Positions 15,346 to 59,476 of a stretch of DNA of 64,000 nucleotides are shown one piece after another. A program made the translations under genes and the position numbers. The notes beneath the pieces are model-generated. The model ran no database searches and was not told the DNA's origin. It worked only from the letters and a program-made list of their open reading frames with translations. How positions within the stretch are numbered: the stretch's first letter is position 1; every line of letters begins with the position of its first letter. This DNA comes from Macrostomum lignano (Eukaryota), in the NCBI GenBank assembly GCA_002269645.1, contig NIVC01000093.1, positions 186,001-250,000 of the forward strand. Direction: 5' to 3'.

Positions 15346-15413
15346 TCGATCTTACTCTTTAGTATTCATCCTGACACACAATCAAGCAATCAAATAAACT
15401 TCCTCCTACTCAG

Positions 15414-29835: not shown

Positions 29836-30059
29836 GTGAGTTGTCTGCTCATATTGTTGGCTATAGATCTAAAAAATGTCTCAGTGACTCTAGAACACGT
29901 AGATCATTGAACCAGTAAGATCGATAGACTAGATCTACTCTTGACCTCTACTCTTGACCTTCTAGGCTTGAAACTCTTTCACATCGAAGTCAAATGAGCC
30001 TTTAAAGCAACAAAAAGATGACTAGTTTCTTCATAGCAGACTCGCGATATGCAAATAAT

Positions 30060-31183: not shown

Positions 31184-32683
31184 CCGAGCACGATCGACAA
31201 TCCGCTTGGAGGTCGATTTCACTTCGCATGCGACTCCAGCGGAGGCTTGATGTCGCTCGGCACACCAGACGGCCGGCTGCATCGATTCCTAGCGAATTGG
31301 GGCCTGGCCACCAACCGTATTCTGTATTGGCCCTGCAAAGACTGCGTCAATCCGTTTGTATTCAACTACGAATCTGGGGATTACCTGCAGTCGTTGCACT
31401 ATCCCAGCCAGCTGCGTCGTTTGAGTTTTGCGCTAACAGCTGATAGAAGAGTGCGCCGAGTCGTTTCTGACCAAGCCTACACCGAGATAGCTTACAGTAG
31501 CGACAACAGCCGACTGCCCAGCGCGTTGCGTACGGTCTATTTTGACGAGACAAATACAAATGTCAGTCAGAGATACGATTATACTGGCGGCTTGCTGAGA
31601 AAACAAGTGATAACGTTCGACTGCGCGGGTGACGATCAACTGGCCAAAGCTAGTTACGTCTACCGCTACGATACCGAGCTGAGGATCGCGGGCATTGAGA
31701 CTGTCATCACCAGTAGGGATAGACAGCCGGTGACCTCTCTAGCGAATGTCACACGCGATCCGATTGGCGGCGGTGTCACTTTGTTGAACGACCTCAGCAT
31801 GGAGAGACGTGTCTCTCATCATGAACACTCGGTGAGACTGCGGGACTCTCACTGCACTCGACGCTTTCAGTTTGACAGTCTGGCCAGGCTGACGGAGAGC
31901 ACGCTGCACTGCGGCTCGGACAGCCGGCGCGCTTTCGTACTCTCGGTGCACGGGCACAGTCGGGGCCGCCTCCAAGAGCAAGTATACCGCATCGGAGAGT
32001 CTGACGGCTTGTCCGTAGCCTATCAGACCAATAAGCTTGGTCTAGTTGTTCGCGCCACCGCAGCTTCAGTCGCTGTAGCCGGCTCTCCAGTAAGAACCAC
32101 CGCGGACGAAGCGCTGGAGTACACGCTCGGCGGTCGAATCCACTGGCGATCGATTCGCAGCAGCTCTGTTGGAGCTCTTGAGAGGTTGAACTACACCTAC
32201 GACAGTCGCACTGGCCTGCCGAAAAGCGTCGGATCTGTCCAATACTCATTTGACGCGGATGGTTTTCTAGCGATGCGTCGACACCGCCTAAGCGCTGGAA
32301 GTGTAGAGAATTTTCGTTACGACGCCAAAGGTTTGGTACGTCGCGCCGAGGCTATTGACTCAAGCGGCCGTCGTCTTTACAGTCTGAGGTACGTTTATGA
32401 CGCCCAGGAGCGCCTACTAGCCAGAATAGATCGACTTCATCCGCAAAAAAGCACGCAGTTTCTTTACGCCGACCCCGAATACCCTCGACGCGTGACGCAC
32501 ATTCTGCCCGGCGCTGGTCGGTTTGAGCAGTCGGTGCTCACTTGCCGCTACGAGGATCGCACCGGTCAGCTAGTTGCCGTGGAAACTGGGGAGCCGCAGA
32601 AAATCGAAAGGTTCTACGTCGTTAGCGACTATTTCAGTTCCCCATTGGCTTTGCTTAATCAACAAGGCGAACTAGAGACACAG
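31184..32683 (+). CDS. TENM: Teneurin exon: YD/Rhs repeats
   Basis: 1500-bp exon in ORF 31154-32797 with many YD dipeptides (QRYDY, YRYDTE, YTYDS, FRYDAKG, YVYDAQER) and YVVSDYFSSPLALLN; ends cag|gtaagc. Confidence 0.95.
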
Positions 32684-32774
32684 GTAAGCAGGGCTAATCT
32701 AGACCAGCTTTTTATTTTAATAAATTTTACGAACCAATATATTATACCTAAACAAACTAAATCGATTATTTTAG

Positions 32775-33953
32775 CTAAGCTACAGTGCCACAGGTGAGCG
32801 CTCAGTAATTTCAAAACGGCCAACCGCTCCTTCGCTACCGTTCGGCTATCGATTGGGCCTGCAAGATCCCGACGCTGGTCTGGTATGGCTTAGTGGCAGT
32901 CGCACCTATGATCCTTACCTTGGCCAGTGGACTGGTCCCGATCCATTGGGCCTGTTCACCAGACTTTCAGCTGCACTTCAGACGCCTGAGTCGATTGACG
33001 GCTACATTTTTGACCACTTGTCAACGACTGAAAACGGTCCTTTGGTGTCCAACTATGAGGAAGTTAGTCGACCGGAATATTGGCTTAAGGCCTTCAACAT
33101 CGACGCAAAGCGACTGTTAAGAGCCACCAACATCGTTTCTATGGGTATAGGCCGTGAAGCTGAAGAAGGTCTGTTGCCAAGGCTGCACCAGAGTCCGCTA
33201 TCACCGAAATCAGTATCCGTTGAGTCCATTTTTGAAGCTGGTTTTCGTCGTCGCCTCGACAGTTTCCAGCGCATCATTGGAGCGTTTGACTTTGTGCAAC
33301 CTTCTTCGGCACCGGTAGCTCCACCTTTGGCATCGGCTCCGGCGTTCATCTACCCGGGATTGCGTCCGACATTTTCAGTCGACGGTAAAATATCCCTGAC
33401 CGGTTGGGAGGACAACTCGTTGGCCTTGCCCGATCGGGTTCGTCAACTGGCCGCATTGGTTTTCAACGGGTCTCGACTGCTGCCTCAGCAAGCCGAAACC
33501 ATAGCCAACGGTCATCGTTGGTTGCGGCTCTATCGCGAGGCTACGCCAGCCACAGAGTCGGCCGTTCGAGATCTCGAACAGTCTATTGCGCCAGCTGGTG
33601 CTGCATCAATCAGCATTAAACGCGATGGCGACGACAGCTGTCTCGAGGTTCGCGTCGACTCCGGCCTGCTGTCAGCTTCTCTTCGCTGCAGCCGTTCGTC
33701 ATTCGAGACCGAGGCGAATCAGCTAGCGACTACCGGACTGCGAATGGTTGCCACGCGATTGATGCGAGCAGAGGCTGCTTCGATCACCGCTGACGGCTAC
33801 GCAGCGACTCGGTTCGACTGGAGCAGGGTGGCCCAGCAGGAGCTACGTCAGAACGGCATCGCAGCCGGTTATCGACCAGCTAATGCTGGAAAAAACCACG
33901 ACCAACTGCTCTGGGACGATCCAGGCAGCGTGTACTTTGTACCGACTGCGTAG
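32775..33953 (+). CDS. TENM: Teneurin last exon: Rhs-core motif, ABD and Tox-GHH-like C-terminus
   Basis: ttttag|LSYSATGE...FGYRLGLQDPDAGLVWLSGSRTYDPYLGQWTGPDPLG...WSRVAQQELRQNG..AGY...DDPGSVYF, stop TAG at 33951-33953. The 13 exons join into one frame of about 2,310 codons. Confidence 0.95.
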   Translation, partial: LSYSATGERSVISKRPTAPSLPFGYRLGLQDPDAGLVWLSGSRTYDPYLGQWTGPDPLGLFTRLSAALQTPESIDGYIFDHLSTTENGPLVSNYEEVSRPEYWLKAFNIDAKRLLRATNIVSMGIGREAEEGLLPRLHQSPLSPKSVSVESIFEAGFRRRLDSFQRIIGAFDFVQPSSAPVAPPLASAPAFIYPGLRPTFSVDGKISLTGWEDNSLALPDRVRQLAALVFNGSRLLPQQAETIANGHRWLRLYREATPATESAVRDLEQSIAPAGAASISIKRDGDDSCLEVRVDSGLLSASLRCSRSSFETEANQLATTGLRMVATRLMRAEAASITADGYAATRFDWSRVAQQELRQNGIAAGYRPANAGKNHDQLLWDDPGSVYFVPTA

Positions 33954-37354: not shown

Positions 37355-38068
37355 ATGGCTGCGCTAATGAACGCTCTTCTGTGGCTTGTGTCTTCAATTT
37401 ACTTTGTCAGCGTGGTGACCGCCGTAAGCAGCAGCTGCGAGTCCAGATGCCCCGTCTACGTCAGAGCGCCGCCACCAGTCTGTGGCGACGGCAAGGAGTA
37501 CATGGACGAGTGTCGGGCCAAGTGCGCCGGAGCCAATGTCATAACCAAAGGCCCCTGTCCGACTATTAATCCGGCTTGTACCTGCTTGGCAGTCTACGAC
37601 CCGGTGTGCGGCGACGGCAAGGACTACGGCAACGAGTGCTTGGCTCGGTGCGCCGGCGCCAAAAAGATCGTCAAAGGAGCGTGCCCGACGAAAGCACCAC
37701 CGTGCATCTGTCCGCTTTACTACAAGCCAGTGTGCGGCGATGGCAAGACCTATTCAAACATATGCTTCGCCCGCTGTGCCGGAGCCAAGCGCATTTCTGA
37801 TGGGCCGTGCAAGTGCCCGTGTCCCAGGATCTACAAGCCTGTGTGCGGCAGCGACGGTGTCACCTATGCCAACAGGTGCTTGGCTCGCTGTTCTGGTGTC
37901 AAGCGAGCTACTCGAGGCCCCTGCTGCCCACCTTGCGCTGTTCGTTGCGCTGACATCTACGACCCAGTGTGCGCTGACGGAGTGACCTACAGGAATCGCT
38001 GCTCGACCATCTGTCTATGCCCGCAGCCCAAGTCCATTGTACCGGGAGAGTGCAGAAAGGGTCGCTAA
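37355..38068 (+). CDS. Secreted multi-Kazal serine protease inhibitor, 5 domains (Kazal gene 1), intronless
   Basis: Hydrophobic N-terminal signal; repeated C-x-C-P-x-I/Y-Y-x-P-V-C-G-(S)-D-G-x-x-Y-x-N-x-C-x-A-R-C-x-G, the non-classical LDTI-like Kazal pattern. Confidence 0.93.
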
Positions 38069-38709
38069 CGGAAAAAAATCTGATTGCGTACTTTTTTACC
38101 TATACCTCTGACTAGATCGTAAATATTCAGACAACATCGAACTTGCGTATTGTATTGTGCATCATTTTTATAACAAATATGACCATTATTCACTTAATAG
38201 CGAATATGGCACGAGTTCGATCCTGCAAAAAGACAATACACTGCAATAACGCTTTAAAAGTAGCTCATCCTACGCTCGTAATTTTTAAGAGACAGCTGCA
38301 CTGGCGCACTTAAAACTGTAAATTTGTCTCATAAGGAGGTAAACCAGCGAGAGAGAGGAAATAAGTATGATATTCGGTTAGCTCCTAAAAATCTCCTAAA
38401 AGCTACAGTTGTTACTCGTCTTGTCGGTATCACTCAATATTTTAATTGAACTCCAAATCTTCGCTCTAGCGACTGCAGGTGTTAATATTATGCATTAAAC
38501 AGGCGGGGAAGTAATCGGGTTAAAAGAATTAAAGATTAAAAAAGACAGCTGTAAAGAACGCATGATTGATTTTTGATACAGCTGTCACAACCCCTCTTCT
38601 GGGCATAAAACAAGCACTCACTGCGTAGAATTTTATTCCAATCTAAACGTTCGAATCATCAGCTCAGTTTAATTTAAAAGCGGTAAAGCAAAATAGCGCA
38701 AGCATTAAA

Positions 38710-41700
38710 ATGCTTTTTCTTGCACTTCCTCTCGCCGTAATTTTTCCTTGCTTAATCGCCACTGCAAACACTGGCTCAATGTGCAAGTCAAACTGCCCAG
38801 TTTACGTTCGGGCCCCTGATACTGTTTGCGGCGCTGACGGCAAACAGTACTACGACAAGTGTAGAGCAATGTGCGCAGGAGTCAAGGTGATACCATGCCC
38901 AAAAAAGCCACCGTGTATTTGTATAAAGATTTACAAGCCGGTGTGCGTTAAGGGAAAGAAAGAGTACGCTAACGCGTGCTTAGCTCGATGCGATGGTGCC
39001 AGAGCTAAGCATATCGTTGACGGTCCTTGTTCAAGACGACCGCCGTGCATCTGTGCCAATATATACAGCCCCGTGTGCGTTAAGGGAAAAGAGTACGGTA
39101 ACGCTTGCTTGGCTCGATGCGACGGTGCAAATCCGAACGACGTATATAAGGGACCGTGCTCGAATCCAAGGTCTTGCGTTTGCACTAAGATCTACCGACC
39201 CGTATGTGTCAAGGGCAAGAAGGAGTATGCCAACGCTTGTTTAGCTCGATGCGATGGTGCCAAAAGTAAATATATCGTCAACGGTCGTTGCAAGAAGCGA
39301 CCGCCTACCTGCGTTTGTACTAAGATCTACCGACCCGTATGTGTCAAAGGCAAGAAGGAGTATGCCAACGCTTGTTTAGCTCGATGCGATGGTGCCAAAA
39401 GTAAATATATCGTCAACGGTCGTTGCAAGAAGCGACCGCCTACCTGCGTTTGTACTAAGATCTACCGACCCGTATGTGTCAAGGGCAAGAAGGAGTATGC
39501 CAACGCTTGTTTAGCTCGATGCGATGGTGCCAAAAGTAAATATATCGTCAACGGTCGTTGCAAGAAGCGACCGCCTACCTGCGTTTGTACTAAGATCTAC
39601 CGACCCGTATGTGTCAAGGGCAAGAAGGAGTATGCCAACGCTTGTTTAGCTCGATGCGATGGTGCCAAAAGTAAATATATCGTCAACGGTCGTTGCAAGA
39701 GGCGACCGCCTACCTGCGTTTGCACTAAGATCTACCGACCCGTATGTGTCAAGGGCAAGAAGGAGTATGCCAACGCTTGTTTAGCTCGATGCGATGGTGC
39801 CAAAAGTAAATATATCGTCAACGGTCGTTGCAAGAAGCGACCGCCTACCTGCGTTTGTACTAAGATCTACCGACCCGTATGTGTCAAAGGCAAGAAGGAG
39901 TATGCCAACGCTTGTTTAGCTCGATGCGATGGTGCCAAAAGTAAATATATCGTCAACGGTCGTTGCAAGAAGCGACCGCCTACCTGCGTTTGTACTAAGA
40001 TCTACCGACCCGTATGTGTCAAAGGCAAGAAGGAGTATGCCAACGCTTGTTTAGCTCGATGCGATGGTGCCAAAAGTAAATATATCGTCAACGGTCGTTG
40101 CAAGAAGCGACCGCCTACCTGCGTTTGCACTAAGATCTACCGACCCGTATGTGTCAAAGGCAAGAAGGAGTATGCCAACGCTTGTTTCGCTCGATGCGAT
40201 GGTGCCAAAAGTAAATATATCGTCAACGGTCGTTGCAAGAAGCGACCGCCTACCTGCGTTTGTACTAAGATCTACCGACCCGTATGTGTCAAAGGCAAGA
40301 AGGAGTATGCCAACGCTTGTTTAGCTCGATGCGATGGTGCCAAAAGTAAATATATCGTCAACGGTCGTTGCAAGAAGCGACCGCCTACCTGCGTTTGTAC
40401 TAAGATCTACCGACCCGTATGTGTCAAAGGCAAGAAGGAGTATGCCAACGCTTGTTTAGCTCGATGCGATGGTGCCAAAAGTAAATATATCGTCAACGGT
40501 CGTTGCAAGAAGCGACCGCCTACCTGCGTTTGTACTAAGATCTACCGACCCGTATGTGTCAAAGGCAAGAAGGAGTATGCCAACGCTTGTTTAGCTCGAT
40601 GCGATGGTGCCAAAAGTAAATATATCGTCAACGGTCGTTGCAAGAAGCGACCGCCTACCTGCGTTTGTACTAAGATCTACCGACCCGTATGTGTCAAAGG
40701 CAAGAAGGAGTATGCCAACGCTTGTTTAGCTCGATGCGATGGTGCCAAAAGTAAATATATCGTCAACGGTCGTTGCAAGAAGCGACCGCCTACCTGCGTT
40801 TGTACTAAGATCTACCGACCCGTATGTGTCAAAGGCAAGAAGGAGTATGCCAACGCTTGTTTAGCTCGATGCGATGGTGCCAAAAGTAAATATATCGTCA
40901 ACGGTCGTTGCAAGAGGCGACCGCCTACCTGCGTTTGCACTAAGATCTACCGACCCGTATGTGTCAAGGGCAAGAAGGAGTATGCCAACGCTTGTTTAGC
41001 TCGATGCGATGGTGCCAAAAGTAAATATATCGTCAACGGTCGTTGCAAGAAGCGACCGCCTACCTGCGTTTGTACTAAGATCTACCGACCCGTATGTGTC
41101 AAGGGCAAGAAGGAGTATGCCAACGCTTGTTTAGCTCGATGCGATGGTGCCAAAAGTAAATATATCGTCAACGGTCGTTGCAAGAGGCGACCGCCTACCT
41201 GCGTTTGCACTAAGATCTACCGACCCGTATGTGTCAAGGGCAAGAAGGAGTATGCCAACGCTTGTTTAGCTCGATGCGATGGTGCCAAAAGTAAATATAT
41301 CGTCAACGGTCGTTGCAAGAAGCGACCGCCTACCTGCGTTTGTACTAAGATCTACCGACCCGTATGTGTCAAAGGCAAGAAGAATATGCCAACGCTTGTT
41401 TAGCTCGATGCGATGGTGCCAAAAGTAAATATATCGTCAACGGTCGTTGCAAGAAGCGACCGCCTACCTGCGTTTGTACTAAGATCTACCGACCCGTATG
41501 TGTCAAAGGCAAGAAGGAGTATGCCAACGCTTGTTTAGCTCGATGCGATGGTGCCAAAAGTAAATATATCGTCAACGGTCGTTGCAAGAAGCGACCGCCT
41601 ACCTGCGTTTGCACTAAGATCTACCGACCCGTATGTGTCAAAGGCAAGAAGGAGTATGCCAACGCTTGTTTCGCTCGATGCGATGGTGCCAAAAGTAAAT

Positions 41701-44261
41701 ATATCGTCAACGGTCGTTGCAAGAAGCGACCGCCTACCTGCGTTTGTACTAAGATCTACCGACCCGTATGTGTCAAAGGCAAGAAGGAGTATGCCAACGC
41801 TTGTTTAGCTCGATGCGATGGTGCCAAAAGTAAATATATCGTCAACGGTCGTTGCAAGAAGCGACCGCCTACCTGCGTTTGTACTAAGATCTACCGACCC
41901 GTATGTGTCAAAGGCAAGAAGGAGTATGCCAACGCTTGTTTAGCTCGATGCGATGGTGCCAAAAGTAAATATATCGTCAACGGTCGTTGCAAGAAGCGAC
42001 CGCCTACCTGCGTTTGTACTAAGATCTACCGACCCGTATGTGTCAAAGGCAAGAAGGAGTATGCCAACGCTTGTTTAGCTCGATGCGATGGTGCCAAAAG
42101 TAAATATATCGTCAACGGTCGTTGCAAGAAGCGACCGCCTACCTGCGTTTGTACTAAGATCTACCGACCCGTATGTGTCAAAGGCAAGAAGGAGTATGCC
42201 AACGCTTGTTTAGCTCGATGCGATGGTGCCAAAAGTAAATATATCGTCAACGGTCGTTGCAAGAAGCGACCGCCTACCTGCGTTTGTACTAAGATCTACC
42301 GACCCGTATGTGTCAAAGGCAAGAAGGAGTATGCCAACGCTTGTTTAGCTCGATGCGATGGTGCCAAAAGTAAATATATCGTCAACGGTCGTTGCAAGAA
42401 GCGACCGCCTACCTGCGTTTGTACTAAGATCTACCGACCCGTATGTGTCAAGGGCAAGAAGGAGTATGCCAACGCTTGTTTAGCTTGATGCGATGGTGCC
42501 AAAAGTAAATATATCGTCAACGGTCGTTGCAAGAAGCGACCGCCTACCTGCGTTTGCACTAAGATCTACCGACCCGTATGTGTCAAGGGCAAGAAGGAGT
42601 ATGCCAACGCTTGTTTAGCTCGATGCGATGGTGCCAAAAGTAAATATATCGTCAACGGTCGTTGCAAGAAGCGACCGCCTACCTGCGTTTGCACTAAGAT
42701 CTACCGACCCGTATGTGTCAAGGGCAAGAAGGAGTATGCCAACGCTTGTTTAGCTCGATGCGATGGTGCCAAAAGTAAATATATCGTCAACGGTCGTTGC
42801 AAGAAGCGACCGCCTACCTGCGTTTGTACTAAGATCTACCGACCCGTATGTGTCAAAGGCAAGAAGGAGTATGCCAACGCTTGTTTCGCTCGATGCGATG
42901 GTGCCAAAAGTAAATATATCGTCAACGGTCGTTGCAAGAAGCGACCGCCTACCTGCGTTTGTACTAAGATCTACCGACCCGTATGTGTCAAAGGCAAGAA
43001 GGAGTATGCCAACGCTTGTTTCGCTCGATGCGATGGTGCCAAAAGTAAATATATCGTCAACGGTCGTTGCAAGAAGCGACCGCCTACCTGCGTTTGTACT
43101 AAGATCTACCGACCCGTATGTGTCAAGGGCAAGAAGGAGTATGCCAACGCTTGTTTAGCTCGATGCGATGGTGCCAAAAGTAAATATATCGTCAACGGTC
43201 GTTGCAAGAAGCGACCGCCTACCTGCGTTTGTACTAAGATCTACCGACCCGTATGTGTCAAGGGCAAGAAGGAGTATGCCAACGCTTGTTTAGCTCGATG
43301 CGATGGTGCCAAAAGTAAATATATCGTCAACGGTCGTTGCAAGAAGCGACCGCCTACCTGCGTTTGTACTAAGATCTACCGACCCGTATGTGTCAAAGGC
43401 AAGAAGGAGTATGCCAACGCTTGTTTCGCTCGATGCGATGGTGCCAAAAGTAAATATATCGTCAACGGTCGTTGCAAGAAGCGACCGCCTACCTGCGTTT
43501 GTACTAAGATCTACCGACCCGTATGTGTCAAAGGCAAGAAGGAGTATGCCAACGCTTGTTTAGCTCGATGCGATGGTGCCAAAAGTAAATATATCGTCAA
43601 CGGTCGTTGCAAGAAGCGACCGCCTACCTGCGTTTGTACTAAGATCTACCGACCCGTATGTGTCAAAGGCAAGAAGGAGTATGCCAACGCTTGTTTCGCT
43701 CGATGCGATGGTGCCAAAAGTAAATATATCGTCAACGGTCGTTGCAAGAAGCGACCGCCTACCTGCGTTTGTACTAAGATCTACCGACCCGTATGTGTCA
43801 AGGGCAAGAAGGAGTATGCCAACGCTTGTTTCGCTCGATGCGATGGTGCTAATCCTAGGGATGTTGTCAAGGGACCCTGCTCGAAGAAACCACCGTGCAT
43901 CTGCCCGCTAATATACAAGCTAGTGTGTGGCGACAAAAAAACTTATTCTAACGCGTGCTTTGCCCGATGCGCTGGAGCCAAGCGCATTACTAATGGTCCC
44001 TGCTTATGTGCGTGTCCGAGAATCTACAGGCCAGTGTGTGGCAGTGACACTAAGACCTACGGCAATCTGTGTCTGGCTCGATGTGCTGGAATCAAGGAAG
44101 TCACTGAGGGGCCCTGCTGCAGGCCGTGCGCTGTCAGATGCGCCAACATATATAAGCCAGTATGCGCTGATGGAGTGACCTACAGGAATCGCTGCATGAC
44201 CGTCTGTCTGTGCCCGCAGCCGAAGTCTATCGTGCCTGGAGAGTGTCGAAAAGATTGCTAG
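38710..44261 (+). CDS. Giant secreted multi-Kazal protein, about 41 domains (Kazal gene 2); as assembled has a -1 frameshift near 41383 and a CGA>TGA stop at 42486-42488
   Basis: Signal peptide, 3 unique Kazal domains, 35 x 135-bp units (CVCTKIYRPVCVKGKKEYANACLARCDGAKSKYIVNGRCKKRPPT), then 3 unique domains ending [18 protein letters not shown]. ORFs 41364-42488 and 43923-44261 are in the same frame. Confidence 0.88.
39175..43848 (+). repeat. Coding tandem array: 35 copies of a 135-bp Kazal unit
   Basis: Unit starts at 39175, 39310 ... 43764 (34x135 minus the 1-bp deletion). Apart from the two lesions, copies differ only at about 4 sites (tgt/tgc, aaa/aag, L/F, K/R). Confidence 0.97.
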
Positions 44262-45027
44262 GGACGCTAAAATATATTTATAGCGACTTATTAGAAACGG
44301 ACTCAATATGACGGTAGTGGGGTTTAGGTAGTTTTTATTAAGGTGTCTTGGTAATCTTAAAATATACTTTCTCTCTGAAGCAAATTTATGCTTATATTAA
44401 GTGCAAAAAAATCCTCCATTTTTCCTCCATTTTTGTCTCAATTGGTGCCGTACTAAATAATTTACTCCATGATGGTTATAGACGCCTAATTCTCTACCTG
44501 GCTGCAACGTGTCAATGGGAAAGACTCTGTCGAATGCAAAGTAAAGACTGAGTGAGGTTCATCGACTTCAGTCAGTTCTTGTCACTGTCATTTTCTGAAA
44601 CTTTAGTCGATTTCAAGCGTTCAAGAAAAAATATTTTGCCAAAAATAACGCCGACTCAGCGGCCGCGATACCAACCCTGGTTTAAAACCAGTTAAAGTCA
44701 GTCACCTGCCTCAAACTGATGCAAAAAACTCAAGCAATCGAATCAAACAGCGATTCGGTTTTAGCTAGAGTCGGAAAAAATTAATCTAATTGCGAGCTCC
44801 TATGCTGAGAAATCGATAGCAAATTTTAGCAATGATATTTCCCTGTGCATGCGCTTTTATTTATTAAAGTGTTTTATTGAAGCAGTTGAAAAGAAAAACA
44901 CGTACTGAGGAGGCGACGCTGAGGCAGTATAGTTTAATTGTGAAAAAGTATTGAAGAATAAACTCAGCATAAAACTTTCTTCACGAGTTTGTTTCAGAAT
45001 TAAAAGTGGCGAATACTGGTGGGTGCA

Positions 45028-45864
45028 TTAATGAATTTCTGATTCAAGCTTGGCCTTGCACTCTCCCGGCACGATCGACTTTGGCCGCGGACACAGGCAG
45101 GTAGTCGAACAGCGATTCCTGTAGGTCATTCCATCAGCGCAGACTGGATCGTAGATGTTCGCGCATTTGACGGTGCACATTGGACAGCAGGCACCGCGGG
45201 TAACTCGCTTGACACCAGAGCAGCGAGCCAGGCACTTATTCGGATAGGTGACATTGTCACTGCCGCACACTGGCATGTAGGATCTGTGACAGCGACACTT
45301 ACATTGTCCGTTAGTAATGCGCTTAGCTCCTGCACATCGAGCAAAGCATTTATTCGAATACTTCTTGCCGTCGCCGCACACAGGCTTGTAGAAACTACGA
45401 CAGCGACACTTACATTGTCCGTTAGTAATGCGCTTAGCTCCTGCACATCGAGCAAAGCATTTGTTCGAATACTTCTTGCCGTCGCCGCACACAGGCTTGT
45501 AGACCAGCGGGCAGAAGCACTGGGGCTTTCTGTCTGGACAGCGACCGTCTTCGATCTTTTTGGCTCTCATGCAGCGAGCAAGGCACTTGTTATTGTAGTT
45601 TTTACCGTCCCCGCACACTGGAGCGTAGATTTCTGGACAGCCGTCAGAGCATGACTTTTTTTTCGGACATCGGCCCTTGGTAATAGCCTTGGCTCCGGCG
45701 CACTTGGCCCGACACTCGTCCATGTATAGTTTGCCGTCCCCGCATACAATTGGCGGCGTTGCAAAGTAGACCGGGCAGCGATAGTTGCAGCCTTGCTCGA
45801 TTGAAACTGCGCCAAAGTACAATGAAGAGAATACTAACATTATAATGGTCTGTAGCACAGCCAT
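45028..45864 (-). CDS. Secreted multi-Kazal inhibitor, 6 domains (Kazal gene 3), intronless
   Basis: Signal peptide MAVLQTIIMLVFSSLYFGA; six Kazal motifs including a near-perfect internal duplication ([32 protein letters not shown] twice); ends [14 protein letters not shown]. Confidence 0.93.
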   Translation of the reverse strand: MAVLQTIIMLVFSSLYFGAVSIEQGCNYRCPVYFATPPIVCGDGKLYMDECRAKCAGAKAITKGRCPKKKSCSDGCPEIYAPVCGDGKNYNNKCLARCMRAKKIEDGRCPDRKPQCFCPLVYKPVCGDGKKYSNKCFARCAGAKRITNGQCKCRCRSFYKPVCGDGKKYSNKCFARCAGAKRITNGQCKCRCHRSYMPVCGSDNVTYPNKCLARCSGVKRVTRGACCPMCTVKCANIYDPVCADGMTYRNRCSTTCLCPRPKSIVPGECKAKLESEIH

Positions 45865-46639
45865 TTTAAAATGGTAAAGCTTTTTATGGTTTAAAAAGAT
45901 GATATATTGTATAGCTTTGGTTTTGCTTGAGTCGAATTTCCAACCAATTTATATACATTTTATTGGTTAATTATGCAAGACCTTCCCGTTCTTGCAGCAA
46001 CGTGCTTAAACCGAAAATTTTGACACTCATATACGAGTACGTTTCTGTGCAGCAGATGGTGATACATGCAGTGCAATAAAACTTTCCTTTTTGACTTGAG
46101 CCCTAACACTAAGGTAGATAGCCTAATTTTTCAGGGTTTTCTAGGGCACGTGCAGTGTCTTGCTTTTAGTAACCGTGCATTTATTAAACAATCAATCAAA
46201 AAGCAAGCATGCAATATTATGTAACCGTTAGTCAGGGTCAGTAAAGTGCCAATGCTTTATGCGCATTATGTCGATTAACTATAGGCACGCATAAGCAGGA
46301 AACAGTGAAATATCAACAGATTTATTAATACTCAATGCGCACGCTCAGGGTAGATGAATACAGTAAAAATAATTACAAAAAGCTAGTGAATAATAATTCT
46401 ATTTTAATATACTATATTACTATAATATTAATTATTATTCGACGTAACGAGAATAAATATTTTTGAAGTCAATATCAAGCCTCACGGCAGATGCTTTCTG
46501 GTTTGTGTCGTGTCTTTGCTGAATTTTGTTAGAAGTTCCATTGTCTCTGTCTTCTTGAGTCATTAGGTAAAATACTTCATCCTCTGCAGTAATTTTTTTA
46601 ATTAAAAACTTTATCCAAGATTTCCCATTAAAATTTATC

Positions 46640-47180
46640 ACAGTTAGAACTGTAAAACTTCCAAGGACATTTAAACAGGAATTAATTGAACTTCATTTTC
46701 TACCCCCACATAGCACTTTGGGCAGGTCCCGTTCTCGTGAGGGATCTTTGGACTTGCAGTCCTCATTGTTTCGCAGGCCAGTTTATGATTTGCTAATCTA
46801 AACTGTGACAGGGGGGCGCTTTAATTCTGGATTGCAAATTTCTAGGACAATACTTCAAAGTACTTTTGGCTGACTTGTAGAATTGCCTGACAAGATCTGT
46901 AATTGATCCTCTCGATTACTAGACTTCGGTCCCAGGGTCCAAGGTTCCAGGAAATGAATGCCCCCCAGGCCTTAGAGGCGAAAAAACAGTGTCCTTTTAA
47001 CCATGGCTGTGCAAAAGAGAATGAGTTGACGGTGCTTTACTGTTCCAACACCAACTGATTTTCTTTGAAGCATTATGGGATAGCCGCACTTATTGCTAAT
47101 TCTACTGCGTGAGCATCCCTTCGTGTTCCGATGAAATCCCAGAAATTTCCACTCATGAACTGCTTCTAATACAGTTGGCC
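46640..47180 (-). mobile_element. Degenerate non-LTR retrotransposon (LINE) ORF2 3' end
   Basis: Minus strand reads LSQFRLANHKLACETMR...IPHENGTCPKC...ENEVQLIPV, the LINE C-terminal R.S.H.L..E.GR...R.C..C...EDE.H zinc-knuckle region; contains stops. Confidence 0.55.
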
Positions 47181-48900
47181 CTTTAGTTAGCTTTGTTTTC
47201 GGAAAGTTTATCTCCAGCTGTGATTCTGACAGAATTCAGATATGTGTCAGGGTTTTTTTCGGTAGCTCCACTAGGTCCCCACTGACTATGACCAGGCCAT
47301 CGTAGTATAGTAGATCGTTTACCTCCATTTGATTTACTTGACTTAGCTGCAGGGGGGTCCGAAGACGCAGCGGGGAGGCGAGCGTCGCCCATTCCGCTAA
47401 TCCCTGAAAAGCCCGCATAGGCTAGGGCGCGGGGCCGGTCAGGGAGGTCTGTCGGTCCTGTCTGCAGCGTTGCCTTCAGTGGGGAAGACGGAGGCTCGTT
47501 TGGTAGCCTGTAGGAACCGGATGAGCCGTGGGATGCTCTTGGGCCGGCAAGCGTCGTCCAGGGACGGGTTGGGCCCGAGGTAGTTGAGCCGGTCTCGGTT
47601 GAAGGCCGGACAGTAGCAGACAAAGTGCTCGGCGTCTTCGTTTTCGAGGTTGCAAAAGGGTTAGAGTTCGCTCTGGCGAACGCCTCGGAGGAAGCAGTGC
47701 CTGGCAAAGCAACCGAGACCTGTGAAGGTCATACTTTTACCTCCTCATTCATGATGAAAGTTTTTTTGTGGAGCAACCTTTAAACGCCGAGGGGAGTGAC
47801 CCTATTTGTAATAGTGCGTCCTGGAAGCTGTCCACTCATATTTTGACTTGAAACTTTGCCTCTGAGTACATACCGTCTATTACATGAATGATTACTAACT
47901 AACATTGAGGTCTTTAAGTCTTCAAGTGACGTATCTACGATTACAGTAAGTTGACAATTTAAATCTGCCGCTTCAGTGGAGATACTGGTCCCGCGATTTT
48001 CGGGATAAGAAAACTTGCTTGGGAGGTAGCTCTAAGACCATTTTCCCGAGAAAAACTAGGAAATTCAAACCAAGAACTAAGATTTGCTTAATTAATTTAT
48101 TTATTAGATATGATCCTTGTTTAAAAGGTAATACTGCTGTTGCTTGGTTAAAACTGTCGGTTAGAACCATAAACCTGTCTCGTAAACGTTACTTTTACAT
48201 CGGATTCCATGGCTACATTGCGATCCGTATTTTTACTATAAAAAATCGATAGGCACTTGGCGGGCCAGAGGCAGCCCTCCCCGCATTAAATAAAGGCCAC
48301 CGAAACAACGGGCACGTGACCTAGGACCGGCCAACCACCACCTAACCAAGCTACGCCGGGTCGGACCAATAGAACTGAGGTCTCAGGAAAATTCAAACGG
48401 ACATGCCAATCAAAAAAAAGATTTAAAATGCGCAATGAAGGGGCTCTTGAGTCCAACAGCTAGACAGTTGCAGTAACGCAGTTTTCCAATTATTCAATTC
48501 AAGATTTGGGTCTTTGTTTTCGTTTAAACACAATTATTTTTCAATATAGAAAAACATAAATTGTGTTGTTAGGTACGTAGTGCTCTATATGCTATTAAAA
48601 GCTATTTTAAGCAGTTTTGTTTTTTTGCCAATTCAGAAAAACCCAAGCTCCATCTGGGTGTTCTGTGTTCTGCTTACTCATTGTCTTTTTAGAGCACGTT
48701 CACACATACTCGCAGTAATTTTGTTGCCTGCCAAAATACCGCAATACAGATGACAAGAAAATATTTAAAATTGTTAGCGAAGAAAACATGTTTACCCGCA
48801 TTGAAAACTATATATACGCGACTGAAAATGGGGTAAAGAATAAGACATCGAGACGCAAAATTGCAAAGACTGATTTCGTACCAATTTATTTAAAAAAACC

Positions 48901-50415
48901 ATGATTCGACTCGTCCCAGTTCTGCTGGGCCTGCTGTTCATCTTCCAGAGCTCCGAGGCTCAAACAAAGCCTTCGTGCGAGTCAAGCTGTCCAGTGTACG
49001 TTCGAGCTCCCGACCCCGTATGCGGGGCCGACGGAAGAAAGTACTACGACGAGTGCCACGCCAAGTGCGCTGGCGTTGAGGTTGTCCCTTGTCCGACGAC
49101 AACGACTAGGCCAACGCATATTCCGCCGCCCAAAACGACTAGGCCAACGCGTATTCCGCCGCCCAAGACGACTAGGCCAACGCGTATTCCGCCGCCCAAG
49201 ACGACTAGGCCAACGCGTATTCCACCGCCTAAGCCAACGACTAGGCCAACGCGTATTCCACCGCCCAAGACGACTAGGCCAACGCGTATTCCACCGCCCA
49301 AGACGACTAGGCCAACGCATATTCCGCCGCCCAAAACGGCTAGGCCAACGCGTATTCCGCCGCCCAAAACGACTAGGCCAACGCGTATTCCACCGCCCAA
49401 GACGACTAGGCCAACGCATATTCCGCCGCCCAAAACGGCTAGGCCAACGCGTATTCCGCCGCCCAAAACGACTATGCCAACGCATATTCCACCGCCTAAG
49501 CGAACGACTAGGCCAACGCGTATTCCACCGCCCAAGACGACTAGGCCAACGCGTATTCCACCGCCCAAGACGACTAGGCCAACGCGTATTCCACCGCCTA
49601 AGCCAACGACTAGACCAACGCGTATGCCAAAGCTTACACCGACAACTACACGAAGGTCATCGTGCGAGTCGAGCTGTCCCGTCTACGTTCGAGCTCCCGA
49701 CCCCGTCTGCGGCTCCGATGGCAAAAAGTACTACGACGAATGTCGCGCCAAGTGCGCTGGCATCAAGGTCGTTTCTTGTCCGACTCCGGAACCCTGCATT
49801 TGCACGATGATCTACAAGCCTGTGTGTGGAGACGGCAAGGACTACGGCAACGAGTGCATGGCTCGTTGCGACGGGGCCGTAGATATTGTCGACGGCCACT
49901 GCCCGACTAAGAAACCGCCCTGCATATGCACGAAGATCTACAAGCCTGTGTGCGGAGACGGCAAAGACTACGGCAACGAGTGCATGGCTCGTTGCGACGG
50001 GGCCGTAGATATTGTCGACGGTCCGTGCCCGACAAAGAAGCCGCCGTGTCTCTGCCCACTAATTTACAAGCCTGTGTGCGGAGACGGCAAAGACTACGGA
50101 AACGAGTGCATGGCCCGCTGTGCAGGAGCCGAGGAAATCGTTGATGGGCCATGTCTGTGCTCCTGTCCGAGGTACTATCTGCCTGTCTGCGGAAGCGATG
50201 GTGTCACTTACAGCAACATGTGCTTCGCTAGGTGCGCCGGAGTCACCTGCACATCGCGCGGGCCCTGCTGTCCGAAGCGGTGCCCAGTCTGTGCCGACGT
50301 CTATAAACCGGTGTGCGTTAATGGCGAGAAAACGTACAAAAACAGATGCATGACCCTCTGCCTTTGCCCGAAGCCGAAGTCAGTCGTACCTGGAGAGTGT
50401 CCGAGAAAAGGATGA
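48901..50415 (+). CDS. Secreted multi-Kazal protein, 7 domains with a Pro/Thr/Arg-rich stalk (Kazal gene 4), intronless
   Basis: Signal peptide, Kazal domain, 15 x TTRPT(R/H)IPPPK repeats, a second copy of the N-terminal-type Kazal, then five more domains. Confidence 0.93.
   Translation: MIRLVPVLLGLLFIFQSSEAQTKPSCESSCPVYVRAPDPVCGADGRKYYDECHAKCAGVEVVPCPTTTTRPTHIPPPKTTRPTRIPPPKTTRPTRIPPPKTTRPTRIPPPKPTTRPTRIPPPKTTRPTRIPPPKTTRPTHIPPPKTARPTRIPPPKTTRPTRIPPPKTTRPTHIPPPKTARPTRIPPPKTTMPTHIPPPKRTTRPTRIPPPKTTRPTRIPPPKTTRPTRIPPPKPTTRPTRMPKLTPTTTRRSSCESSCPVYVRAPDPVCGSDGKKYYDECRAKCAGIKVVSCPTPEPCICTMIYKPVCGDGKDYGNECMARCDGAVDIVDGHCPTKKPPCICTKIYKPVCGDGKDYGNECMARCDGAVDIVDGPCPTKKPPCLCPLIYKPVCGDGKDYGNECMARCAGAEEIVDGPCLCSCPRYYLPVCGSDGVTYSNMCFARCAGVTCTSRGPCCPKRCPVCADVYKPVCVNGEKTYKNRCMTLCLCPKPKSVVPGECPRKG
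49100..49625 (+). repeat. Coding 33/36-bp tandem repeat (TTRPTRIPPPK x15) in Kazal gene 4
   Basis: Seen directly. Confidence 0.95.
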
Positions 50416-52102
50416 AGGGGAGACACCTGACCAAAATGAACTTTTGGAAATTGTTTTTAATACTCATGAGTGTCTCATGTACATTTACATTTACATTAAA
50501 CTGGCCAATTCATATCCATCTGTAACTATGTCTTCCATTATATTTTATTTTCTACAACCGTACAGGGTAATTGTAACCGACGACGAGCTATTGTTTTTAA
50601 TCTGAGAGTAAATTTGGGAATTTTTCGGAATACGATCTGAAAATGTTTGCTTAAAAATCAAATTTTCTGGGGAATCGTTAATAAACTGCTTATCGAACTA
50701 TTTCAAGAGCTTTGTGAAGCTTTGTGAAACTTCAATATGGACTTCATGATTACTCGTACCAATGTAGTGACTGTTGAGGGGAATTGTTGAGATGTCAAGG
50801 CTTACGAAATTTCAAAGCTGACAGAGGAAATTGCTGCCATGTCAAGGCTAAGAGGTCAAAACCTACATGAACTCTTAGTTTATTCAAAACATTTAGTCCA
50901 TTCTTTTTTTGTGTCCACAGCGGGGGCGCTGAGCGCAATTCCAATATACTAAAAATGATTTTACTCTATCTAGGTAGGTATTTATTTCTTTAGTTGCAGA
51001 AAAAACGGCTCAACCGATTTTCTACACCCTTTGATCAGAAATTTTCCCATGACGGAACGGTAGATGTTTACTGGCTGAATTGACTCCGACTTGAATAGCG
51101 TCAAAGTGTTGAAAACACAATGTGGAAGCAAAGCACAAGACTTGATTGGAATTGCGTAACCATATTATAAACTTTTATGAAAGCTGATACTGACTGACTG
51201 GGAAATCGATTACATCATAACTGCTTTCTGTGACTTTTACTCTAACCGTCTTATTGTGAGTGTTGAATTATAAGTGCCAAGATTTAAGCCATCAGTTGGA
51301 TGAGAGCTGGCCTACACGTGAACAGACTGAACTGCTGATGCAGCGACCCGGGCTCGAATTTTGAGAGTGTAATCTTTTTTATTTAAAGCTTTTTGAATAT
51401 GAAGCAAACTCAAAGAAAGAAAAACGTAAAAGAGGCGTCATGTCAAACTTAAAAGATTAATTGGGGAATTCCTAAGATGTTAGGGCTTATGGGAAATTCT
51501 GAGATGTCAAGGCTGACAGGGGAATAGCTGCGATGTTAAGGCTGAAAGGTCAGAGGCGACATATGTATAGTTTAGTCAAAAAAATTATTCCATTCTTTGT
51601 TGCCTCCCCCACGCTGATTGCTGGTAAACAAGTAAATATGCTAGTGAATCAAGCTTGAATGGCAGTTGACAGTAATAGATGTAAAAATATTTTTCAAAAA
51701 CAGTAATTCGTTTTTCTGTTTATTTTCTAAATTTTTCTCTTAGAAAAGCTGCATCAATAGCGTGCAAAAATAGCATACAAGTATAATAGCTAAGCACTGC
51801 AACCTGTGATATGAGTCGATAAAGGTGCAGTTTAACTTTTATGAGTAGATGCTTAGAATAGGTAGGTGCACAATCTGGATAAAATGGGTTGAGTACTCAG
51901 GTGGTAGAGATGAGAGAAGAGGAGAGAAAGAAAGGCCAGGCCAGCGTACTGAGTCGCCTGGTTTACTGGCCACATCCACACCCAGTTGCAATGGGAAGGT
52001 CACTGTCCCATTAGATTATATATACTCGTATATTAGAGGTTATGCCCACAATAGCATCTTCTACCAACTGCATCTATAATTCAGCATTAAAAACGGATAG
52101 TG

Positions 52103-52921
52103 ATGTCGATTCCAGCCTCCATCTCTATGCTTCTTGTTCTAACTGGCACCTGCTTGAATCTGCCTGACGCTGCCGCTGCGCCAACAAGCTGCGAGTCCAG
52201 CTGCCCGGTCTACGTCAGAGAGCCAACACCAGTCTGTGGCGACGGCAAGGAGTACATGGACGAGTGTCGGGCCAAGTGCGCCGGAGCCAAGGTCATCACC
52301 AAAGGCCCCTGTCCGACTATTAATCCGGCTTGTACCTGCTTGGCAATCTACGAGCCGGTGTGCGGAGACGGCAAGGACTACGGCAACGAGTGCTTGGCTC
52401 GGTGCACCGGCGCCAAGGTCATCTCAAAAGGCCCCTGTCCGACTCCGAAGCCGTGTGTCTGTCCGGAAATTTACCAGCCGGTTTGCGGCGACGGCAAGGA
52501 CTACAGCAACGAATGCTTGGCTCGGTGCGCCGGCGCCAAGGTCATCTCGTCTGGCATCTGTCCGACTGAGTCACCTGGCTGCATCTGCCCCATGATCTAC
52601 GACCCTGTCTGCGGCTCTGACGGTCGCACCTATTCAAATGGTTGCGCAGCCTCTTGCGCCGGTGTTAAAGTGGTCTCCAAGGGCCGTTGTGAGTGTCGGA
52701 ACTGTCCGAAAATCTACAAGCCAGTGTGCGGCAGCGATGGCGAGACCTACCAGAACGCTTGCCAGGCCAAGTGCTCCGGCGTGAAGAAAATCTCTCAGGG
52801 CACCTGCGGCTGCGTTTGCCCGCTAGTCTACGCGCCAGTGTGCGCCGATGGCAAGACCTACGACAACGAGTGCGAGGCCAACTGCGCCGGAGTGAAGAAT
52901 GCCAACCCGGGCGAGTGCTAA
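52103..52921 (+). CDS. Secreted multi-Kazal inhibitor, 6 domains (Kazal gene 5), intronless
   Basis: ATG at 52103, signal peptide [18 protein letters not shown], six Kazal motifs, stop TAA. Confidence 0.93.
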
Positions 52922-53832
52922 ATCGTGGATTCTTGTTTCCAGGAAGCACTGCTACGAGCGTACACTATCTCTTGCAATGCACTTATAAATCTTGAAGGTA
53001 GAAAGAAGCGAATGTTCTATTTTTTCAAAATCTATTTTTTTAACTTAATAATCGGTGAATACAGACTAAAAAATAAATGCCTGCCTGCAAAACCATACCC
53101 GTAAAAGGAGAATATTAATTTAAATATGGTAATCTAGCACATTTATCAAATACAACCATCGATAATAGCTACATATATGAACATAAATGTACCATTAATG
53201 TAGACCCAGATGCAGTTCTTGTATCCAAATATCAAAATAGCTTTTTCAGATTAGTAGCTTTGTACATACTTTATAATACGAGCTACAAACTGTTGTATTA
53301 TTGAACACATATTTCTTACGTGCCACTTTAATAAACACTTGAGACTTATTATTACTGAACAAAAGCAAAACGAAAAATAAATAAGTCCATAATGAAGTTC
53401 AAGAGTTTCTCAAAGCTCCTGAAACCGTTAGAAAAGTTTATTTACGATGCTTCAAATTATTTGGATTTTCAAACGTTTTTACCTACCTTTCACATTAATT
53501 GCCAATAAAGTCGCAAACCGCCTCAAATTAATAGCAAGAGCTTGTCGCAAGGTTATAATTAACTTGTATGGTCACTATAGAAAAATATGATAAGAAGAAA
53601 CTTGCATTTTAGATCAATAAAATTTGGCCAGCTTTATACGAATGTACAGTGCATGAGACACGAGATACTTGTGATTATTAAAAAACAGTTTGAAAAAGTT
53701 CATTTTGGTCAGGTGTCTCCCCTTCATCCTTTCCTCAGACACTCTCCAGGTACGACTGACTTCGGCTTCGGGCAAAGGCAGAGGGTCATGCATCTGTTTT
53801 TGTACGTTTTCTCGCCATTAACGCACACCGGT

Positions 53833-54927
53833 TTATGGATGACAGCAGGGCCCGTGCGATGTACAGGTGACTCCGGCGCACCTAGCGAAGCACATATTGC
53901 TGTAGGTGACACCATCGCTTCCGCAGACCGGGAGATAGTCCCTCGGACAGGAGCACAGACATGGCGGCCCATCAACGATTTCCTCGGCTCCTGCACAGCA
54001 GGCCAAGCACTCGTTTCCGTAGTCTTTGCCGTCTCCGCACACAGGCTTGTAAATTAGTGGGCAAAGACACGGAGGCTTCTCGGTTGGGCAAGGACCGTCG
54101 ACAATATCTACGGCCCCGTCGCAACGAGCCATGCACTCGTTGCCGTAATCCTTGCCGTCTCCGCACACAGGCTTGTAGATCTTCGTGCAGATGCAGGGCG
54201 GTTTCTTTGTCGGGCAAGGACCGTCGACAATATCTACGGCCCCGTCGCAACGAGCCATGCACTCGTTGCCGTAGTCCTTGCCGTCTCCGCACACAGGCTT
54301 GTAGATCTTCGTGCAGATGCAGGGCGGTTTCTTTGTCGGGCAAGGACCGTCGACAATATCTACGGCCCCGTCGCAACGAGCCATGCACTCGTTGCCGTAG
54401 TCCTTGCCGTCTCCGCACACAGGCTTGTAGATCTTCGTGCAGATGCAGGGCGGTTTCTTTGTCCGACAGGGGCCATCGACAATATCTACGGCCCCGTCGC
54501 AATGAGCCATGCACTCGTTGCCGTAGTCCTTGCCGTCTCCGCACACAGGCTTGTAGATCTTCGTGCAGATGCAGGGCGGTTTCTTTGTCCGACAGGGGCC
54601 ATCGACAATATCTACGGCCCCGTCGCAATGAGCCATGCACTCGTTGCCGTAGTCCTTGCCGTCTCCGCACACAGGCTTGTAGATTTCCGGACAGACGCAC
54701 GGCGTCTTCTTCGTTGGCCTCGTCGTTGTCGTCGGACAAGGGACAACCTCAACGCCAGCGCACTTGGCGTGGCACTCGTCGTAGTACTTTCTTCCGTCGG
54801 CCCCGCATACGGGATCAGGAGCTCGAACGTACACTGGACAGCTTGACTCGCACGAAGGCTTTGTTTGAGCCTCGGAGCTCTGGCAGATGAACAAAAGACC
54901 CAGCAGAACTGGGACGAGTCGAATCAT
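53833..54927 (-). CDS. Secreted multi-Kazal inhibitor, 8 intact domains, last domain frameshifted (Kazal gene 6; inverted paralogue of gene 4)
   Basis: [37 protein letters not shown] is nearly identical to gene 4. Has 126-bp internal repeats. The rest of the ninth domain (KPVCVNGEKTYKNRC...PGECLRKG*) lies out of frame down to 53724. Confidence 0.9.
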   Translation of the reverse strand: MIRLVPVLLGLLFICQSSEAQTKPSCESSCPVYVRAPDPVCGADGRKYYDECHAKCAGVEVVPCPTTTTRPTKKTPCVCPEIYKPVCGDGKDYGNECMAHCDGAVDIVDGPCRTKKPPCICTKIYKPVCGDGKDYGNECMAHCDGAVDIVDGPCRTKKPPCICTKIYKPVCGDGKDYGNECMARCDGAVDIVDGPCPTKKPPCICTKIYKPVCGDGKDYGNECMARCDGAVDIVDGPCPTKKPPCICTKIYKPVCGDGKDYGNECMARCDGAVDIVDGPCPTEKPPCLCPLIYKPVCGDGKDYGNECLACCAGAEEIVDGPPCLCSCPRDYLPVCGSDGVTYSNMCFARCAGVTCTSHGPCCHP

Positions 54928-58688: not shown

Positions 58689-58889
58689 TTCGCCTCTCTC
58701 ATATGACTTAGTTATATTCTAGCACCGCGTTTCCGTGTTGATAAGAATTTTAGAAATTGCGGTTTTTCCTTTAACCCCCCTTTGTTGTGCTTAAGTTTTT
58801 TTACCAAAAATCTTTGCAGCAATAGCAAAGGTATCTTGGTGGTTTGCCAACGGAAGACGCACTTTCCAGATTCTCCCTTCTCTGTTGCT

Positions 58890-59304
58890 ATGCCAACTCC
58901 TTCCAGTAGTTCGCGGGCGTCAGCAGTGCTGCTTCTGCTGACAGTCTGCAGTTTGCCGGTCCTGCAGTTGGCGAAAGCGTCGACAACGGACGCACCAGCG
59001 ACAACTATGGAGGCGCCTACGGCAGCTCCGACAACGCCAATTCCAACTCTACCGTCGGTGACCGATCTCAAACCGGATGCGGCAAGAGCCACGGTAGATT
59101 CGGTGTATTTTTCATGGACGCCTGTGTCAGGAGCAGGCGCCTCATACTGTGTCAACTGCTCGGGAAAGCCTGTTGAATGCAACATCACCGCCAGCAGCTA
59201 CACCTGTACCGGTTTGAGCTCCGGCGCAGAGCACAGCGTGACAGTCGTAGCACAAGCTCCAGGACATCTGGACAGCCCGCCCAGCAGCGCCACAGGCAAA
59301 ACTC
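58890..59304 (+). CDS. FN3-repeat secreted or cell-surface protein, exon 1 (signal peptide, Thr/Pro/Ala linker, FN3 domain 1)
   Basis: MPTPSSSSRASAVLLLLTVCSLPVLQLAKA signal; VYFSWTPV...Y.V...YTCTGLSSGAEHSVTVVA FN3 pattern; donor c|gtgagt (phase 1). Confidence 0.85.
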
Positions 59305-59476
59305 GTGAGTGAAGCTTCTGGGTCAAACACTTGGAAACAGCGCTGACATCAATTGTAGTTGGCTCATCTCAGACACCTTTTCTCTTGGAGCTTTTGAAAC
59401 TCAGCAACCCCATTTTTGAGCAAATGTCTTCCTATGACAGATGTGTTAAAACAGAACGGCTCACTAAGAGAAACGC

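Follow-up and report, generated by a model that had tools for sequence, protein, structure and literature searches.

Positions 186,001–250,000 of contig NIVC01000093.1 from the flatworm Macrostomum lignano (GenBank assembly GCA_002269645.1, Mlig_3_7), a 64-kb stretch that we refer to as the window, contain a cluster of six single-exon paralogues (g1–g6) built from Kazal domains. These genes probably encode secreted, multi-headed, non-classical Kazal-type serine-protease inhibitors, derived from one ancestor of at least five domains with expansion of the interior. All six begin with the same atypical domain (the N-cap), and four end in an intact Kazal variant with two extra cysteines (the C-cap). 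Duplication, unequal exchange, gene conversion and purifying selection of the ordinary sort account for this architecture, which calls for no new mechanism.

Six intronless genes composed of Kazal domains

Searching the whole window by tblastn with all domain types returns Kazal coding sequence from just six intronless single-exon genes between 37355 and 54927 (orientations + + − + + − from g1 to g6), as an initial annotation, made from the letters alone, had proposed. Each open reading frame (ORF) consists of a hydrophobic N-terminus (20–27 residues, by inspection) followed by Kazal domains, and Pfam Kazal_1 and Kazal_2 match all six genes with E-values of 1e-10 to 1e-39. Whole proteins score 39–133 bits against Kazal Pfam cut-offs of 21 and 22.8, and interior domains taken alone score 24–45 bits. 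Kazal domain totals are 5 (g1), 41 (g2), 6 (g3), 7 (g4), 6 (g5) and 8 (g6), giving 3 to 39 internal domains, in agreement with the earlier count of 3 to about 39. A TATA-like box lies at −86 to −98 bp from the ATG in four of the six. NCBI record NIVC01000093.1 includes a called gene whose product matches that of g5 exactly; exact database look-ups of g1, g3, g4, g6 and the first piece of g2 matched no record, and the closest database protein to any product of the cluster is at most 45% identical. The genes and their principal parts are as follows.

37355–38068 (+): g1, a 237-aa predicted secreted protein with 5 Kazal domains; N-cap 37436–37558, C-cap 37925–38053
38710–44261 (+): g2, 41 Kazal units; N-cap 38782–38898, C-cap 44118–44246
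39175–43849 (+): tandem array of g2, 135-bp unit ×34.6, 99% identity
45028–45864 (−): g3, 278 aa, 6 domains; N-cap 45667–45789, C-cap 45058–45186
48901–50415 (+): g4, 504 aa, 7 domains; N-cap 48976–49092, C-cap 50269–50400
49101–49629 (+): Pro/Thr repeat of g4, 33 bp ×15.8, encoding a linker of the TTRPTRIPPPK type
52103–52921 (+): g5, 272 aa, 6 domains; N-cap 52190–52312, last domain 52811–52918
53833–54927 (−): g6, 364-aa ORF, 8 domains; N-cap 54736–54852
53724–53837 (−): out-of-frame C-cap remnant of g6, HKPVC...CLCPKPKSVVPGEC...stop, ~97% identical to g4

Domain order points to a common multi-domain ancestor

In a neighbour-joining tree of all domain types, the domains cluster by position, not by gene. 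Bootstrap values are 91/100 for the N-cap clade, 99/100 for the C-cap clade and 73/100 for the antepenultimate domains of g1, g2 and g3, which carry a CPL motif; the penultimate group (CPR...GSDG) is weak at 25/100. Interior domains group by gene (g2 83/100, g4 with g6 70/100). P1, the second residue after the second cysteine (C2) in standard Kazal numbering, is Leu in the antepenultimate domain and Arg in the penultimate, and these two domains ahead of the C-cap are also fixed in position, a feature that the initial annotation missed. Since the domains group by position, we trace the family to a five-domain ancestor, and the six genes are most simply read as whole copies of an ancestral gene that had at least five distinct domains. 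Its order would have run from a domain with a long loop, P1 Val and Asp substituted for Asn (position 1, the N-cap) through a variable-P1 domain (2), the CPL domain with P1 Leu (3) and the CPR...GSDG domain with P1 Arg (4) to a terminal domain that in most copies has two extra cysteines (5, the C-cap). Whole-gene duplication and inversion would have spread this order, with purifying selection holding the positions distinct.

The paralogues are old and remain under constraint. Synonymous divergence (dS) between them is ~0.7–1.5, and the ratio of nonsynonymous to synonymous divergence (dN/dS, or omega) is 0.06–0.13 for the C-cap, 0.09–0.16 for the CPL domain, 0.00–0.37 for the N-cap and 0.10–0.45 for position 2, noisy figures given domains of just 36–41 codons. 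The C-cap is under strong purifying selection.

A long-loop N-terminal domain

A regular expression for the N-cap finds exactly seven matches in the six-frame translation, one at the start of each gene and an internal copy in g4 (49663–49779), which confirms the atypical N-terminal domain first described for all six genes. The long loop and the Asp replacing the usual Kazal Asn stand as described, the Asp being present in all seven copies and in none of the other domains; the loop consensus itself, CPVY[VF]-x2-P-x2-VCG, is one residue shorter than the motif then given. The N-cap has six cysteines, spaced C1-x3-C2 (C1-x1-C2 elsewhere) and with 10 residues between C2 and C3 rather than the 7 of the other domains. 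Residues P2-P1-P1' are invariantly Pro-Val-Tyr (7/7). Two subtypes can be told apart: GDGK.YMDEC...ITKG.C in g1, g3 and g5, and G[AS]DG..YYD.C with a shorter C5–C6 segment in g2, g4 and g6. Scored alone against Pfam, type B reaches 29.9 bits and type A 21.0 bits, the latter just under the 22.8 cut-off.

A profile search with the N-cap through a word index gave three candidates, none significant. Local rescoring of earlier matches and a DNA-pattern scan brought up relatives in two unrelated environmental proteins, P0095 (a protein from an ENA metagenome contig) and L002 (a 456-aa ORF on a JGI metagenome contig). Each holds three to four internal copies at 46–53% identity, sharing with the N-cap the pattern C-E-x-x-C-P-[VI]-Y-x-R ... 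Y-x-D-x-C-R-A-[KQ]-C, the lengthened C2–C3 loop and the Asp for Asn. They differ in that the domain is repeated within one protein, accompanied by an extra Cys-rich hairpin, and is not confined to the N-terminus. Occurrence in unrelated contexts, free of positional constraint, is what the initial annotation had named as refuting its cap reading, and for the N-cap these copies tell against that reading.

Two environmental ORFs, L001 (ENA ERZ27265937 contig, 218–1219) and L002 (JGI Ga0075158_10107706, 96–1466), encode Lys/Asn-rich predicted secreted proteins with three to four N-cap-like Kazal variants each, an extra Cys hairpin after each copy and ordinary Kazal domains at the end. The N-cap-like domains of this pair are an undescribed Kazal subtype.

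An eight-cysteine C-terminal domain

The C-cap follows the pattern Ca-x2/3-Cb-x2/3-C2-x7-C3-x9/10-C4-x3-C5-x-Cx-x10-C6. One extra cysteine precedes C1 by three to four residues, the other follows C5 by two, and the domain ends 4–9 residues past C6. The initial annotation had assigned such a terminal module to five of the six genes. The eight-Cys form is intact in g1, g2, g3 and g4, and g6 is indeed broken, but g5 ends in an ordinary six-Cys Kazal domain (...PGEC-stop) that joins the C-cap clade weakly (60/100 bootstraps). The g6 ORF halts at ...GPCCHP, where the C-cap ought to begin; a 26-bp deletion relative to g4 took the start of the domain and shifted the frame, and the tail TYKNRC...PGEC survives.

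Most likely, the two extra cysteines form a fourth intradomain disulfide (Ca–Cx). Mature cysteine totals are even in g1 (32), g3 (38) and g5 (36) which, together with the eight cysteines of the domain itself, leaves no spare thiol in the C-cap. Odd cysteines occur in g4, within the penultimate domain, and in g2, as the very last residue (RKDC).

Taken alone, the C-cap scores 17.8–18.9 bits, under the Pfam Kazal cut-off of 21, and its nearest PDB sequence is CrSPI-1 domain 2 (31.7 bits). A C-cap profile search of 1.84 billion representatives returned 1023 matches, in an order set by the scores that ordinary multi-Kazal proteins sum over their domains. The best 150 of these and the matches from earlier searches, 274 proteins in all, were rescored per domain; the extra-Cys (C5-x-C) pattern was found in none of them, the best score (38.5 bits) belonging to an ordinary six-Cys domain. 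JGI metagenomes and GTDB genomes yielded ordinary Kazal domains only, none with the C-cap pattern. The searched protein sets seem to lack M. lignano's own copies, and absence elsewhere is to be read as absence outside Macrostomum. On this sequence evidence the eight-Cys C-cap is apparently a lineage-specific Kazal variant. The initial remark that the caps belong to no named family is half right: both are divergent Kazal domains, and the eight-Cys form is unmatched elsewhere in these searches.

Greglin, conkazal-M1 and schistosomin also combine a Kazal core with eight cysteines, the fourth bridge tethering a C-terminal extension with an extra helix (PMC13101452). The C-cap has no such extension and carries its extra cysteines elsewhere, and homology is not indicated. 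A follistatin-like (FS) module, considered as another identity for the C-cap, was rejected: that module has ten cysteines, an N-terminal EGF-like hairpin with two disulfides preceding its Kazal part, whereas the C-cap has eight, with one extra cysteine before C1. Pfam matches to the C-cap at E ≤ 10 are Kazal_1 and Kazal_2 only, with no follistatin-type family listed, and the follistatin matches that Foldseek finds for a model of g1 (template-modelling scores of 0.11–0.16 on the query and 0.12–0.23 on the target) reflect several Kazal units.

Expansion of the interior and exchange between paralogues

Tandem interior units are present in g2 (135 bp ×34.6, 99% identity), g6 (126 bp ×5.4, 95%), g4 (126 bp ×2.6), g5 (123 bp ×2.2) and g3 (111 bp ×2.2), the last representing a duplicated antepenultimate domain. 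Each unit of the g2 array is one P1-Lys Kazal domain plus linker. The final g2 unit is a hybrid, with an array-type head and a tail (DGANPRDVVKGPC) like that of the pre-array domain (DGANPNDVYKGPC), a trace that unequal exchange would leave if its breakpoints fell within the domain. These near-identical in-frame units, together with exchange between paralogues, uphold the early view of the interior as an expandable cassette driven by recombination.

We propose that domain number would shift only through in-frame tandem duplication of interior units, by unequal crossing-over or slippage, and that interior units would homogenise within a gene. Edge domains would be barred from register-shifted exchange and may stay unique because such exchange would cost the signal peptide or the stop codon. 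An unrelated Kazal array of 1233 aa (P0133) follows the same pattern: its ~21 interior units are identical, but its first and last domains are distinct. Tandem expansion thus seems, as a general side effect, to leave unique ends. Gene conversion between paralogues would also move end modules.

At the DNA level, g1 and g5 share 94% identity over the N-cap and 88% over the domain that follows (37433–37797 versus 52187–52548), against 48% over the signal peptide and 59–67% over the last three domains; the last three domains of g1 are closest to g3 and g2 (79–84%). This pattern points to g1 being a mosaic of g5-like and g3-like parts, assembled through a conversion or exchange tract. Genes g4 and g6 form an inverted duplicate pair (48715–50757 versus 55116–53370) that includes ~190 bp upstream and ~340 bp downstream, with identities of 98% in the N-cap and ~97% in the C-cap remnant, compared with 83% at position 2. 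A mosaic g1 and the likeness of g4 and g6 at their ends thus argue that gene conversion or paralogue exchange is active.

Lesions in g2 and the linker of g4

As assembled, g2 reads in three pieces (38710–41400, 41349–42485 and 42489–44258), which were analysed separately. Unit 17, starting at 41335, is one base short and changes the frame, and unit 25 contains an in-frame stop at 42486, neither of which the initial annotation had noted; these two lesions aside, the 35 array units vary at four polymorphic sites only. The M. lignano assembly was built from PacBio reads with Canu and polished by Pilon with short reads (PMC5730564). We do not place trust in the g2 lesions, because a 4.7-kb array at 99% identity defeats Canu assembly and Pilon polishing; assembly error or a young pseudogene is possible.

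The order in g4 is N-cap, Pro/Thr-rich 11-aa repeat, second N-cap, three interior domains, penultimate domain and C-cap. The Pro/Thr-rich linker looks mucin-like, and g6 holds one unit of the same type of repeat. At the DNA level the 33-bp repeat also gives rise to long artefactual ORFs, in three alternative frames and on the complementary strand (48982–49485, 49044–49568 and 49076–49810).

Predicted inhibitory function and alternative readings

All interior domains have six cysteines with a spacing compatible with 1–5/2–4/3–6 pairing (C2-x7-C3), and the Asn of Tyr-x-x-Asn is kept in all interior, penultimate and C-cap domains. An AlphaFold model of g1 has an E-E-H-E succession in each domain and a predicted local distance difference test score (pLDDT) of ~65–88 in 10-residue blocks across the domains, with a predicted template-modelling score (pTM) of 0.29; as modelled, g1 would be beads on a string, with no packed array. 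Foldseek matches the model to rhodniin, LDTI (65% identity over 37 aa), CrSPI-1 and the infestins with probability ~1.0. P1 differs by position: Val in the N-cap; Ala, Glu, Lys, Met or Asn in the interior; Leu in the antepenultimate and Arg in the penultimate domain; and Asp or Asn in the C-cap. Each protein would be a string of independent inhibitor heads with differing P1, and g2, if intact, is predicted to be a highly basic chain with ~36 identical Lys heads.

Several observations weigh against this prediction. The loop-supporting Asn is missing from the N-cap. In the C-cap, the most conserved part is the C5–C6 segment, not the reactive loop, and Asp or Asn at P1 is poor for most serine proteases, as known from OMTKY3 P1 studies; the C-cap may not be an inhibitor head at all. 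Both g2 and g6 may be pseudogenes. The ancestral order leans on a penultimate group of weak bootstrap and on noisy dN/dS estimates, and papers and supplements yielded no Kazal genes of Macrostomum or their expression.

The peculiarities of the C-cap underlie the main rival reading, in which it is a Kazal-derived docking or stabilising module whose invariant C5–C6 face would either attach to a partner (matrix, glycocalyx or another secreted protein) or shield the C-terminus from exopeptidases, leaving inhibition to the other domains. Within CLCPxPKSxVPGEC, 12 of the 14 residues are invariant while P1, P1' and P3' vary, omega is at its lowest here, the P1 residues and the sub-threshold Pfam score suit a domain with another role, and the extra-Cys pattern is absent among the best matches from the 1.84 billion representatives and two DNA collections. 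However, g5 manages without a C-cap and g6 has lost it, an AlphaFold model of the cap alone is poor (pLDDT 56, low confidence, and not used here), and the binding partner and location are purely hypothetical; we consider docking unlikely. More doubtful still is a broader proposal in which each of the two end domains is a new Kazal subtype with its own function: the N-cap would be an undescribed subfamily shared with environmental eukaryotes, its invariant Pro-Val-Tyr implying one conserved target, and the Macrostomum-specific C-cap would dock or anchor the chain on matrix or cell surface. If true, the cluster would be an 'anchor plus variable warhead array' system, with warhead number changing fast between individuals.

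The initial annotation had suggested that the caps nucleate folding, or oligomerise or cross-link through spare cysteines, and had drawn a parallel with capped leucine-rich repeat (LRR) arrays, whose end modules are LRRNT and LRRCT. The likeness—distinct first and last modules around a variable repeat number—is superficial: LRR caps shield the hydrophobic core of one continuous solenoid, whereas Kazal units are separate globules, and there is therefore nothing to cap. That the caps are the best-supported domain clades, that the lowest dN/dS is found in the C-cap, and that g2 ends in an extra unpaired cysteine and g4 has an odd total would all fit dedicated modules. Against this, eight cysteines in the C-cap and even totals in g1, g3 and g5 leave nothing to cross-link, and the odd cysteine of g4 lies outside the caps; Kazal domains fold alone, in keeping with confident single domains at low pTM; g5 lacks the eight-Cys form, and g6 keeps a long ORF without the cap; and N-caps occur internally in g4, P0095 and L002. 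Neither the capping role nor the LRR parallel is borne out, and we judge such modules very unlikely.

We give similarly little credence to the idea that the long members g2 and g4 act above all as structural polymers in secretions (mucus, egg shell, ejaculate or adhesive), with Kazal units serving as robust, basic, disulfide-rich building blocks rather than inhibitors. The g2 pieces are ~25% Lys + Arg, with basic residues 3.6–5.4 times as frequent as acidic ones, g4 contributes its mucin-like repeat, and a precedent exists in Mlig-ap1 and Mlig-ap2, secretory proteins of M. lignano that contain very large internal repeats and stretches rich in Lys/Arg (PMC6410801). Yet every Kazal consensus residue is retained in the repeated unit, as is a canonical reactive loop (C-T-K-I-Y-R-P-V-C), g2 may be broken, and the adhesion paper reports no Kazal domains in Mlig-ap1 or Mlig-ap2 (PMC6410801).

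Relation to known Kazal proteins

For the multi-headed inhibitors that we favour, the best sequence and structural matches are non-classical multi-domain Kazal inhibitors (MEROPS I1; PF00050, PF07648), such as rhodniin, LDTI, the infestins, CrSPI-1 and other crustacean and insect members. Common features are six-Cys domains with a short C1–C2 spacing, a PVCG-x-DG-x-TY-x-N-x-C core, short linkers and a different P1 per domain. The cluster differs in that most of its domains carry GDG, a residue fewer than GSDG, a gene can hold as many as 41 domains, and two unusual subtypes occupy the ends. Ovomucoid, ovoinhibitor and LEKTI (SPINK5) likewise have an inherited order of distinct domains, position-wise specificity and some non-canonical Cys patterns. 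Their vertebrate genes carry introns, typically splitting each domain, and are not tandem intronless paralogue clusters with recent 99%-identical interior arrays.

The hydrophobic N-termini and 5–41 Kazal units per protein also conform to the architecture of SCREPs (secreted cysteine-rich repeat proteins), in which disulfide-rich domains that fold independently follow a signal peptide in tandem, with multivalency gained by domain duplication (PMC6262176). The SCREP concept is drawn mainly from two-domain venom peptides (PMC6262176), whereas the cluster genes have 5 to 41 domains and belong to a non-venomous flatworm. The database proteins that match g1 best are multi-Kazal proteins (P0001 and P0004) from the annotation of two Claviceps sp. 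genomes. Kazal arrays are unusual in a fungus, and these matches may represent horizontal transfer or contamination.

The cluster is a new lineage-specific set of multi-domain Kazal inhibitor genes; of the two unusual domain subtypes that it contains, one is apparently new. To the catalogue it adds a 41-domain Kazal gene and the apparently lineage-specific eight-Cys variant, and it ties the N-cap to a small undescribed Kazal subtype in environmental sequence. It is also a clean example of how a multi-domain inhibitor gene grows, with ends frozen by descent and selection, an interior that expands and homogenises, and paralogues that swap modules. For M. lignano, the predicted family of secreted protease inhibitors could play a part in secretions of the gut, in mucus, or in reproductive or adhesive secretions.

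Other features of the window

Upstream of the cluster, teneurin-like exons at 15331–33953 (+) encode TTR, FN-plug, NHL, RHS and YD-shell domains. The product is distant from solved teneurins, the best PDB match being Drosophila Ten-m, with vertebrate teneurins weaker. Introns between these exons are packed with micro- and minisatellites, and such satellites are dense at 1–14700, 22728–25435 and 28378–29294, where they cause spurious long ORFs and extreme GC skew; examples are (TCTCTCCCCA) ×285 at 9981–12801 and a 41-bp unit ×66 at 22728–25435. This density fits the 15% of the M. lignano genome reported as simple and tandem repeats (PMC5730564). Scanning the window for Rfam families and tRNAs gave no match. 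Between g3 and g4, a 174-aa ORF (47183–47707, −) is Ser/Pro/Thr-rich and has no Pfam match. Downstream, an ORF at 58782–59312 (+) gives a weak fibronectin type III match (E = 6e-4, below cut-off) and may be an exon of a downstream gene.

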